Assembly: GCA_950097015.1 (NCBI GenBank) | Contig: CATNEN010000029.1 | Location: forward strand, 3,410,001 to 3,474,000 | Direction: 5' to 3' | DNA length: 64,000 bases | Source: Macrostomum hystrix | Lineage: Eukaryota; Animalia; Platyhelminthes | In this document: positions 45,313 through 49,747 of the stretch, one piece after another | How the letters are laid out: each line of letters opens with the position of its first letter | Position numbering within the stretch: the stretch's first letter is position 1 | The notes under the pieces: generated by a model | The model's input: the letters and a program-made list of their open reading frames with translations, nothing else | Told to the model about the DNA's origin: nothing | The model's database searches: none | Position numbers and translations under genes: made by a program

Positions 45313-47035
45313 AGGATGCTGGGCTGTCCTAATTGCTACTGGCTATACAAGGTCTTGCCGTGCAAGCGAACTGTAAAAGTGCAGCTTAGGCAAATCCCGT
45401 GACTTCTGTATTCACGGGGGGAACCGAGTCACTGCAATCCGGATCGGACCGGATTCGCGATTTGGGTTGTGTCCCAGTTCGAAATTCCCGTCTATAGTTT
45501 ATCGGGCTATTTCTTCCCCATATTTTATAAGCATCGTTGCATCCTACTTGCCGCCTTATCTTCATGGCAATGCTACAAACGCTGGACAAAAAATAATTTG
45601 TTAAATGTACTATTACGCGCTCGTAGTTTGTCGACGCACTTTCATCCTCATTAAAGATGTGCTTCGTATAGCTTCATAGCAAAAAATGAAGATACATTTT
45701 GAGTCCAAGCGAAAGCCTTTTAAGATGACAATGAAAGGTGGTAGTATTGCAGGCCCTCAGGTGTTAGTAATCAACGGTGCCTGGTTTTAAAGTGTATTTT
45801 TCGGTGAGATGTTTGCAGTTTGATAAAACAATCCATATCTAAGCTATATTGCAGCGCTGGTAAATTAAAACAAAAATAATATAAACTAAACTAGTTTTTT
45901 TAACAAAGCAGTTTATCGGCGTTAACTAGACTAACTCGATGGGGCTGCTTGACGCGATCAGTTTCGAGGAAATACCACTTGAAGATCCCAATAAACCCAA
46001 TTTATGAATTCTTAGAAACTAGACAGATAGACAGAGAGAAGAGTTGAGTCAAAGCCACAAGTGAACAACAATTACTCTGGACCCATATCTATCAGCATTC
46101 TCTATTAGGCCGATAATTAAAATTCTGCTTGGTCACGTGGGCCTCTCTACCGCGCTGCACTTTGCCCCTTCAAGCATTTATGCACACCAGAATATGGTGG
46201 GGCGGCTGGCGCACAAAAATTAGCTTGCAATGGAATTTTTCGGTACTTTTCCATGAAACACTCTGGCTAAGCTAGCTCTGGTCTTTATCTCTAGTCTAGC
46301 ATTCTTCGCTGTTCCACTAGTGATTCAGCTAACTGAAAAATTATTATTTTATCGCTTGAACTCATTGACGCTAGCGATGTAGACAAAAATATAGAATTAT
46401 ATATATTGTAAATAGAAGGGTGATAATGTATTAGACATTGGGAATGGGAGACAGTGCAAGCTTACACGTACAGGCAGGCCAATAAACTGGGATGTTTTAA
46501 CTTTGTTCGTCTTCTAAATCATAAAAAGATGCTGGCGGGCACTACAGAATTAAAACCAAGAAAGCAGATGAGTTTTTTTGTTAAAACAGAGGAAGAAACT
46601 ACGCGTTTTCTTTTGATCGTAGATAGGCTGAAAAAACTGACAACAATTTGTGAAGAAAAATTATTTTGTCCTTTTTAAAACATTTTACGTAGCGAAGTAT
46701 GAGTTTGTAGGGGGGAGACAAACACCTGGATCGATGCTGCGAGCTGATCACTTCCAACTCAAACCTGACGCTCCTGCTCAACGGTTAGCTCCTTTCTCAG
46801 TCTGCCAATTATGTTTCCTTCCTAACTGTATTTGATTTTTAGAGCAAAAGTCTATAAAGAACTGTAGGTAATGGCTTTGAGATTTAGGGCCTAATTTCCG
46901 GTAAATCTAGTGTTAAGATCTCAGTTTTTAGAGAAGAGTGGCAACCGACGATTCTCAAAAAAGGGCGCAAACAAAGCGTAGAGCGAGAACGGGCGAGAAT
47001 GAGAAGAAAGTGACAAACAGGCTGGGCCACCGAAA

Positions 47036-49240
47036 TCAGTCGGCAATCTGGTAAACCATGTAAGCGAAGTCGCCTGCGTCAGTGCCCAGCCGCTCCTCCG
47101 GCCTCGGGTTGTAGAGGGCGAAGCCCAGGAAAAGCAGCGTTTTAAGAAGCGCGTCTGAAATACAAACCATGGGAAGTGCGGACAGTCTGGTAAAATGCAA
47201 CTGCCCTGCGCCAGGTCGGTCCTAGTTTCAATTGCATTGTCTATGGGCTGTCCCTAACCATCAATCTGTGGACAGTCCCTAACCCCCAGTTTGTGGACTG
47301 TCCCTAACCCTTAGTCTGAGGACTGTACCCTAAAACCTAGTCTGTGGACTGTCCCTAACCCCCAGTCTGTGGACTGTCCTTGAATTACCCCCTGTCTCTA
47401 AACTGTACCTAATTTTAAGTCTGTGGACCCGCGGACCGTCCCTAAACCCAGTCTATGGACTGTCCAGTCTTTAGGCTGTTCCTTTCTCCGCAGCCAGTCA
47501 GTTGCAAGCCAACGAACCTTTGTCCTGCCTGCGCCGACTAACGCCCAGCAGCACACGGTCACACTGGAGCTCCTCCTCTGCGAACTCCAGCATGTCCGTC
47601 AGCTGCTGCTTCAGCCGCTCGCCCAACTGGTCGCACTCGGTTAAGCGCAGCGACATTGTCTGCCGCTGACCAGAACCGGGTAGAAGAGTGTAAGCTAGCT
47701 GCTGCTGCTGCTGACCGCCGAACCCAAAACCGACCATAGACCCATACTGACGGCCGGCACTCGTAGACGACTCATTGCTAACATGGGTGACAGGGGGCTT
47801 GTTTAGTGCCCCCAGGCCGCTGCCCTCTGTCAACTGTGCGCTGACTGTGGCGGCCCGGGGAGCATCAAAAACCCTGTCCAGGCCCAGCAGTGGGACGGGA
47901 GCAATAATCACTCAGCTCCTTACTCCTGTGGAAATAAGAAAATGGAAATAGAAAGTTGATTCTATTAAAAAATTCTAATAAGTTGTAAGTTCCTTCTATC
48001 TAAGAGCTATCTAATATTGTGATTGTGAATTGCAGTTTGATAGAAAGCAAAGAAATTTGTATATAAAATCAAAATGACACTTCCTTGGTGATTTTTATAG
48101 TCTATAGAATATATAGTAATGGCTATATAAAAAGGACTCAGAGACCTTCACTGAAAATAAGAAATCCTAACAAAAATGTGCAAAAGCATATTTAACAACC
48201 TGTACATAGGCTATAAACCTGGGGATGATTAAAGAGCTAGTATAATTTTATATTTTATTATAGCCATTTTTTGAGAAAAAATCAATGACAATACCTCTTT
48301 AAACACTTAAGTCAAGATTGAAAGTGGTGGATTTAGGAGGAGGTGGGTGAATGCCTCTAATGGGGTGGTTGGCAACCCCCTAACAGTCCACCCCCAAAAA
48401 ACTGCATTCCAGTATCTGCTACTAAATTATTATTGAGACTATAATAGGCTACTTAGGAAATAAGTGGCTTGAACTGATTGCAAAACATGACCTAATGCTA
48501 ATGCTAAGAATGATAACATCTGAAAACCTTATGTCATAACATAAGTTCTGATAACCTAGATTATTTTAATTTGTAAACCACTCAATTTCATACAAAACCA
48601 TACCAAAACAGAATTGCTACCAATACAAATCTTCATTATCCTGTTTCAAACCATAAAAGTGCTATTGTTTCGACTTTTGCTTTAGCTTTCTAACTAAGAT
48701 TTATTTTTTTGACAAGTTAATAAATTTACAAAATAACAACACAAAAAACAGAACTTTTTAAGGAAACATGTCCAGAGGATTTTTTTAATTTTGGTCGGTG
48801 TGGCAGGCAATTAGGTGGGATGGCCTGGTGTTGTGTGGTGCAGCACTGCAATTTAGTTTTTTACTATAGGGTTGCACAGGCCAAAGCTGTTGTTAGCTTG
48901 TCGCGGTGATCTATTCAGACAAAATTTTAGAGTTCCCAGGCACATGTCTAGGAATTTTGTGCAACAATTCCAATAGGGCAAAATACTAAAAATTATACTA
49001 GAAAAACTACTAGAAAATTCATAGCCTGCCTAATTGCAAAAAACACTTACATTACTATTCTAAGCGTTAAGGGCATCCATAATTTCATACAATTATATTT
49101 AAGCTCTTGAGTATTGTATACAAAACTTTCTTTACAGCTCTCCATTTTGTCATCATAGAGACTACAGATATTGAGACTTACACAAAAAAAATTACTGAAG
49201 CAGAAAAATCGAACTATTACCGTATGGATAATTTAGCCAT
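47036..49240 (-). CDS. OAZ: Ornithine decarboxylase antizyme, expressed via a +1 programmed frameshift
   Basis: Exons 49240-49221 (gaccATGG...CG|gtaata; best candidate first exon), 47925-47518, 47154-47036. ORF1 MAKLSIRSKELSDYCSRPTAGPGQGF* ends in TTT-TGA (47870-47865). ORF2 in the +1 frame carries antizyme motifs LTDMLEFAEEELQCDRV...RRRQDKDALLKTLLFLGF...AYMVYQI. Confidence 0.92.
47268..47465. repeat. Degenerate minisatellite (TGTGGACTGTCCCTAACCC) in the OAZ last intron
   Basis: Several diverged copies. Confidence 0.75.
47788..47870 (-). promoter_or_regulatory. Antizyme frameshift site UUU-UGA plus 3' stimulatory pseudoknot
   Basis: Stem 1: 47864-47850 with 47820-47807 (14 bp, one bulge). 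Stem 2: 47832-47822 (UGACAGAGGGC) with 47798-47788 (GCCCCCUGUCA), 10 of 11 pairs. Confidence 0.85.
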
Positions 49241-49747
49241 GGTCGATTCCTTGAAACGCAACAACGTGTAGCTTAGAGAGAAATTCTATGAGCAAAACTG
49301 CCGCAAAGAGCAATGTTGTATTCGCGCTGTGAATGTTTTGTTGACTATATTTACGAAACTCGTATTCGCGCATTAAATATCACTAATCCGCTTATATGCA
49401 AAGTATAACAAAATACTGTGCTATTGATAAAAAATTGTTGAATGCTATTTTATAGTAAAAAACGTTATCTTGTTTTATATGGCTTTTTGCGCTTTTAACT
49501 TGCAGTTTCCAGCACAGAATTTTAGTACGGACAAAACCCTCATTTGTTTCGTTAACTCCTTTGGCTGATTCAGATGCAAAATATACTTACACCGTATGTG
49601 CATTTCATTTGCGGATTAAGTGGTATATGCTGTTCACAACTTTACAATTCAAAAAGATGTGATACATATAATCTAAATCATCTGGAATCATCGCCATGCA
49701 CGGCTTTCGCATGTACCTCTTACCAGGTAACCTTCATTTTGTGATTG

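Follow-up and report, generated by a model that had tools for sequence, protein, structure and literature searches.

The window analyzed here is a 64,000-nucleotide (nt) stretch of the genome of the flatworm Macrostomum hystrix (assembly GCA_950097015.1, contig CATNEN010000029.1, positions 3,410,001 to 3,474,000 of the forward strand; positions below are those of the window). It carries a three-exon gene on the minus strand, read directly from the window sequence, that is very probably an ornithine decarboxylase (ODC) antizyme gene of Macrostomum whose product is made by a +1 frameshift at UUU-UGA beside an RNA pseudoknot. The evidence comprises a short first open reading frame (ORF1) whose stop codon overlaps a second, +1-frame ORF (ORF2) containing the antizyme domain and lacking a start of its own, spliced RNA that retains the stop, and a pseudoknot directly 3′ of the stop that is conserved across macrostomid sequences.

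Gene structure, transcripts and protein identity

The gene is organized as follows, with every feature on the minus strand:

49241..49328, minus strand: 5′ untranslated region (UTR), a minimum extent set by RNA contigs that end at 49328 (X1), 49317 (X2) and 49272 (X16)
49221..49240, minus strand: exon 1, coding part (ATG GCT AAA TTA TCC ATA CG); ATG at 49240-49238, GT donor at 49220-49219
47926..49220, minus strand: intron 1, 1295 nt, GT..AG; exons joined at 47925/49221 in contigs of all four runs
47518..47925, minus strand: exon 2, which holds the shift site and the pseudoknot between the remainder of ORF1 and the larger part of ORF2; the ODC_AZ domain starts here; GT donor after 47518
47871..47905, minus strand: conserved block 5′ of the shift site, UGCUCNCGNCCNCCUGCNGGGCCUGG..., from an alignment of five upstream sequences; candidate 5′ stimulatory module
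47865..47870, minus strand: frameshift site UUU-UGA, with P-site UUU at 47870-47868, ORF1 stop UGA at 47867-47865, then U at 47864
47155..47517, minus strand: intron 2, 363 nt, GT..AG; exons joined at 47154/47518 in contigs of all four runs
47036..47154, minus strand: exon 3, coding part, with the C-terminal 38 codons and a split codon; stop TGA at 47038-47036

The 3′ UTR runs on below 46700. No upstream ATG occurs in the 5′ UTR sequence between 49328 and 49241. After splicing, ORF1 reads MAKLSIRSKELSDYCSRPTAGPGQGF, 26 codons from the AUG at 49240, and ends in UUU-UGA-U, a known shift codon followed by UGA in a weak termination context. ORF2 begins in the +1 frame with GAU (47866-47864). In the mature mRNA its frame is closed upstream by a TGA at 47914-47912, 14 codons before the shift site; the sequence between that TGA and the shift site contains no ATG in the ORF2 frame, and the only internal ATGs of ORF2 lie at codons 44 and 71. 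A predicted trans-frame protein would therefore comprise 26 + 155 = 181 residues. A first-pass annotation, made from the sequence alone, had described both the 26-codon ORF1 ending in UUU-UGA-U and a +1-frame antizyme domain without a usable AUG; all of its coordinates for ORF1 are correct, and the closed frame together with an ODC_AZ score above threshold bears out the second point.

RNA evidence comes from Logan contigs of four runs, drawn from three studies, that were placed on 46700-49450 at an identity of at least 99%; one run or more is on record as metatranscriptomic RNA-Seq. Contigs of all four runs skip 47155-47517 and 47926-49220 (CT..AC on the plus strand). Exon 2 begins at 47925, preceded by a polypyrimidine tract and an AG acceptor, and since spliced contigs join 49221 to 47925, the predicted 20-base coding exon 1 is indeed used. 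Within exon 2 the sole difference from the genome is an A to G change at 47555, in one low-depth contig and distant from the shift site. The contigs of the four runs, an assembly form from which rare variants escape, show no indels in exon 2 and no differences at or near 47864-47870, and the mRNA thus keeps UUU-UGA. Both of the checks on cDNA that the first-pass annotation had proposed, use of the 49240-49221 exon and retention of UUU-UGA, are answered by these contigs, with the exon joint seen in all four runs.

Parts of the antizyme mRNA (window 46700-49330) also appear in metatranscriptomes X5-X13 from sediment, outdoor, wastewater, root and salt marsh samples, including a spliced contig at an identity of at least 99% in the sediment run X5. 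M. hystrix or a very close species seems to occur in environmental RNA samples. Two observations concern the introns. Intron 2 holds about five copies of an approximately 22-nt repeat at 47250-47450, with a unit like gggttagggacagtccacagact. In intron 1, 43 bases at 48858-48900 are matched at 90-95% identity by one low-depth X16 contig whose flanks are unlike the window; this is probably a fragment of a dispersed repeat. The M. lignano introns likewise hold tandem repeats, with an approximately 35-nt unit (..ccttgccatctcagcaatcccccca..) upstream of exon 2 (L004:3270-4200) and an approximately 45-nt unit in intron 2 (L004:5300-6040).

To identify the protein, exon pieces were searched separately against Pfam and protein databases. 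ODC_AZ (Pfam PF02100) matches the +1 frame with 32.1 bits against a gathering threshold of 24.2, and the exact exon piece scores 30.9; the match in exon 2 covers model positions 24-75 only. The 38-amino-acid piece from exon 3 is too short for a Pfam score of its own, and its residues agree with the C-termini of proteins P0002 and P0003. A six-frame ODC_AZ search of the whole assembly returned two loci only, the present gene (31.8 bits) and one on contig 38. Word-based protein search returned Macrostomum antizymes only, namely two M. lignano proteins of 85-86 amino acids and two Logan products of 83-84 amino acids, with 91% identity to the M. lignano protein over the antizyme domain. The gene thus encodes an antizyme of this genus.

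All four matched proteins begin at an internal Met equivalent to codon 71 of ORF2. The first-pass annotation had expected standard gene callers to mis-annotate the gene, and the public M. lignano proteins, which start at this internal ORF2 Met, are a case in point. The practical value of the analysis accordingly lies in annotation: at both loci, automatic calls for the M. hystrix genome would leave out ORF1 together with the first 70 ORF2 codons. In a separate irregularity, exon 3 of the M. lignano genomic copy (NIVC01000808.1, L004:6100-6235) reads aaccccggccggagg, and its counterpart in the window reads aacccgaggccggagg. The length difference alters the frame, giving P0001 an unrelated C-terminus (..GRRSGRASRQATSLTWFIRLRTE); P0002, for which no contig is on record, has a normal end. 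The difference may reflect an indel in the M. lignano assembly or a duplicate undergoing decay in that polyploid genome.

A conserved pseudoknot directly after the stop codon

The elements of the pseudoknot, again all on the minus strand, are:

47850..47864, minus strand: stem 1, 5′ arm, UGCUCCCCGGGCCGC, with U47861 bulged
47833..47849, minus strand: loop 1, 17 nt, containing the 5′ arm and the loop of a nested hairpin
47822..47832, minus strand: stem 2, 5′ arm, UGACAGAGGGC
47821..47821, minus strand: hinge, a lone A joining stem 2 to the 3′ arm of stem 1, invariant in the alignment
47807..47820, minus strand: stem 1, 3′ arm, GCGGCCUGGGGGCA; C47816 pairs with G47854
47799..47806, minus strand: loop 3, 8 nt, CUAAACAA, which differs between species
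47788..47798, minus strand: stem 2, 3′ arm, GCCCCCUGUCA, invariant in all five sequences compared

Stem 1, 14 base pairs (bp) long with a single U bulged out, begins immediately after UGA and has a duplex energy of -29.6 kcal/mol. Stem 2 pairs at 10 of its 11 positions (-16.0 kcal/mol), its 3′ arm lying 8 nt past stem 1, and the whole structure spans 77 nt. Both stems, as well as a nested hairpin that overlaps the first four bases of stem 2, had been placed correctly to the base by the first-pass annotation. As a control, the 100 nt that follow the stop were shuffled with their dinucleotide composition preserved. A stem at the stop of at least this length combined with an equally strong stem 2 arose in one of 1000 shuffles. 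The stem-2 duplex alone reaches -20.7 kcal/mol in this control, compared with -12.8 +/- 2.7 for the shuffles, and is matched by 13 of 2000.

In the minimum-energy fold without a pseudoknot, loop 3 forms a helix with the shift site GGUUUUUG; we reject this helix because loop 3 differs in every species and because the ribosome covers the site. A search of 47000-49500 with Rfam cmscan at E <= 10 found no antizyme element, Antizyme_FSE included; its matches to mir-15 (18 bits) and CssrA (15 bits) fall far under their thresholds and were taken as chance.

Conservation was assessed across five macrostomid sequences: the window gene, the contig 38 copy (L006), the M. lignano genomic copy (L004), and two spliced transcripts of related species (L001-L003 and L008). 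ORF1 is 26 codons long in transcripts L001 and L008, ending in UUU or AUU followed by UGA; UUU-UGA is kept in L004, L006 and L001, and AUU-UGA is found in L008. The stems are near-invariant throughout, while loop 1, loop 3 and all sequence 3′ of stem 2 diverge. Pairing is retained in 99% of cells across the five sequences, as opposed to 37-47% when the partners are slid. At the stem-1 pair G47854/C47816, three sequences have G-C, whereas L008 has G-U and L001 has A-U. Covariation analysis, which had been suggested as a further check, thus yields one compensatory pair in stem 1, but the covariation score does not rise above that of shuffles (205 of 500 reach it, for five sequences only). With so few sequences, covariation alone proves little.

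Synonymous sites are more informative. At positions where the amino acid is invariant, the codon is identical in all five sequences at 17 of 19 positions in the pseudoknot; within the antizyme domain this holds for 6 of 22 (Fisher p = 1e-4). Of the two pseudoknot exceptions, one falls at the stem-1 pair that shows compensation and the other in the hairpin. Because synonymous sites are frozen within the pseudoknot, the constraint acts on the RNA and not on the peptide alone. We take the pseudoknot to exist and to be conserved at the RNA level.

The L008 cassette (L008:43-200), a Logan contig of SRR22269866, combines AUU-UGA with a 26-codon ORF1 and a pseudoknot unchanged save for one G-U pair. 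AUU-UGA is the site reported for planarians and trematodes, so that the two flatworm shift codons are both found on a cassette that is otherwise the same. The macrostomid cassettes form a natural series with the same pseudoknot, UUU or AUU in the P site, and a stem-1 pair that is G-C, G-U or A-U. Such a series would be useful for testing whether the shift codons are interchangeable or what role structure in loop 1 plays.

The second antizyme locus of the same genome lies on contig 38 (22647554-22648102, minus strand; L006:1083-1655, L007, L010) and has UUU-UGA and the same pseudoknot. Its loop 1 is 23 nt long, 6 nt longer than in the window copy, so that the structure spans 83 nt; its nested hairpin has 9 bp, and its stem 1 is without the lowest G-C pair. 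Upstream of the shift, the contig 38 copy and two related transcripts read GGGCCUGGGUGGCG, where the window copy reads GGGCCUGGACAGGG. Its ORF2 carries an acidic, low-complexity insert of about 70 residues before the domain. Exons 1 and 3 of this copy were not found within the 3 kb examined.

The nested hairpin in loop 1 (GUCAGC 47845-47840 / GUUGAC 47834-47829) has 6 bp and an energy of -6.4 kcal/mol, and its 3′ arm takes the first four stem-2 bases, 47832-47829. Each of the five macrostomid sequences is able to form it, with a hairpin loop that varies in sequence and length. In all three pairs that vary, the change is confined to the 5′ arm and is a transition opposite G or U; pairing survives such one-sided transitions automatically, which leaves the conservation of the hairpin suggestive. 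The two arrangements are nearly equal in energy, with -16.0 kcal/mol for the full stem 2 and a total of -13.6 kcal/mol for a short stem 2 (-7.2) plus the hairpin (-6.4). That the 6-9 bp hairpin acts as a conserved conformational switch, perhaps driven by polyamines, which sets the extent to which the RNA stimulates the +1 shift, is a speculative idea that we consider unlikely.

Proposed mechanism and alternative explanations

In the mechanism that we propose, ribosomes would initiate at the 49240 AUG, translating the 26-codon ORF1. When tRNA-Phe occupies the P-site UUU and the A site holds UGA-U, a poor terminator, some of these ribosomes would move one base forward; because the base after UUU is U, tRNA-Phe could re-pair perfectly at its new position. 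Shifted ribosomes would read GAU and continue through ORF2 to yield the 181-residue antizyme. The pseudoknot and the conserved sequence just upstream of the site may raise the efficiency of the shift; 5′ stimulatory modules of antizyme mRNAs have been described by Ivanov & Atkins 2007 (PMC1874602). By analogy with tested antizymes, polyamines would stimulate the shift, and the antizyme would inhibit and destabilize ODC, closing a feedback loop. The frameshift itself, its dependence on polyamines and the stimulatory role of the pseudoknot are thus ascribed to this gene by its likeness to those systems.

Could the cell dispense with the frameshift? A protein of about 85 amino acids translated from the internal ORF2 AUG (MSLRL...) could be the functional product, with ORF1 a mere upstream ORF. 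In its favor, P0001 and P0002 of M. lignano are annotated from that Met, and the Pfam match sets in only five residues before it. The annotation carries no weight, however, because automatic callers cannot model frameshifts. None of the five sequences has a stop among the 70 ORF2 codons that precede the Met, the 26-codon length of ORF1 and the position of its stop are kept in two independent transcripts, and a known shift codon and a conserved pseudoknot with frozen synonymous sites lie on either side of that stop; moreover, the shift is used by all characterized antizymes according to Ivanov & Atkins 2007 (PMC1874602). Translation from the internal AUG alone is therefore very improbable. The frame might instead be restored in the RNA, if polymerase slippage on the five-U run (GGUUUUUGA) dropped one U in some transcripts. 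Loss of one U would bring ORF2 into frame, and a minority form could escape notice in Logan contigs, which drop rare variants. A run of five bases is short, though, L008 has the same arrangement at CAU-AUU-UGA with three U only, and no contig contains an indel; we regard slippage as more improbable still. Least credible of all is an error of assembly at the stop, or a pseudogene. It has the bare in-frame stop in its favor and nothing more, whereas the same stop recurs in two genome assemblies, at the second locus and in RNA contigs of several studies, and the gene is expressed and spliced with ORF2 intact.

Several considerations nevertheless weigh against production of the antizyme by a +1 frameshift beside a pseudoknot. 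The trans-frame product is a prediction from DNA and RNA sequence alone, and the contigs are compatible with rare edited or slipped transcripts. Covariation is thin, with five sequences, one compensatory pair, an invariant stem 2 and the shuffle result given above, so that support for the structure comes mainly from conservation and the frozen synonymous sites. Conservation extends to the peptide that the pseudoknot region encodes (DAPRAATV..LTEGSGLG..PPVTHV), and part of the constraint could lie at the protein level.

Relation to known antizyme cassettes

The first-pass annotation had proposed that this lineage pairs the less common UUU shift codon with a long invertebrate-type pseudoknot. 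The pairing holds: the architecture is that of class IIa and is conserved in the five macrostomid sequences. Its implied novelty does not. Ivanov & Atkins 2007 (PMC1874602) already list the M. lignano antizyme with UUU-UGA and count Platyhelminthes among five phyla with a class II pseudoknot; they also give AUU-UGA for planarians and trematodes and treat the origin of UUU-UGA in flatworms as independent of that in nematodes. Being the ortholog, in the same genus, of a catalogued case, the finding is not new, and its scientific weight is small: it confirms a known recoding arrangement in a second Macrostomum species. Beyond Ivanov & Atkins 2007, only one of the papers searched mentions antizyme together with Macrostomum, and its subject is spermine synthases. 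Metagenome pattern scans for stem 1 with its partner (class II pseudoknots of other animals) returned no matches. The conserved loop-1 hairpin, the AUU-UGA cassette, the longer paralog and the truncated public annotations are minor new points.

The closest known system is the M. lignano antizyme itself, from another species of the genus, which shares UUU-UGA; in its genomic copy (L004) the pseudoknot is identical to that of the window and only loop 3 differs. For that species, the running text of the 2007 paper gives the shift site, assigns the pseudoknot only by phylum and describes neither the structure itself nor a loop-1 hairpin. Antizymes of the Caenorhabditis elegans clade share the UUU-UGA shift site; according to the same paper (PMC1874602) they have no 5′ module B and possess module E. 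Vertebrate antizymes 1 and 2 (class I) belong to the same protein family and share a +1 shift where UGA-U follows a sense codon, as well as an H-type pseudoknot with a 1-nt hinge. They differ in using UCC-UGA and in a pseudoknot that starts 3 nt after the stop and lies within 60 nt (PMC1874602), whereas the pseudoknot of the window starts at the first base after the stop, spans 77 nt and has no match in Rfam.

The architecture of the pseudoknot fits class IIa. Ivanov et al. 2004 reportedly defined the invertebrate antizyme pseudoknot, and the type example of class IIa is said to be that of Crassostrea gigas. Members of class IIa have a long stem 1 adjoining the stop, an extended loop 1 and a hinge of one nucleotide, and the weak context at antizyme shift sites usually consists of a U or C following the stop (PMC1874602). 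In the window, a 14-bp stem 1, within the roughly 11-14 bp expected of the class, adjoins the stop, loop 1 has 17 nt, a 1-nt hinge precedes the 3′ arm of stem 1, stem 2 closes downstream, and the span far exceeds the 60 nt of vertebrates. The G+C-rich character of stem 1 is likewise shared, the comparison being with the description of the class; in the five macrostomid sequences the stems are kept, with one compensating pair, and the loops vary. The P-site codon sets the two apart: it is UUU in Macrostomum hystrix and UCC in Crassostrea gigas.

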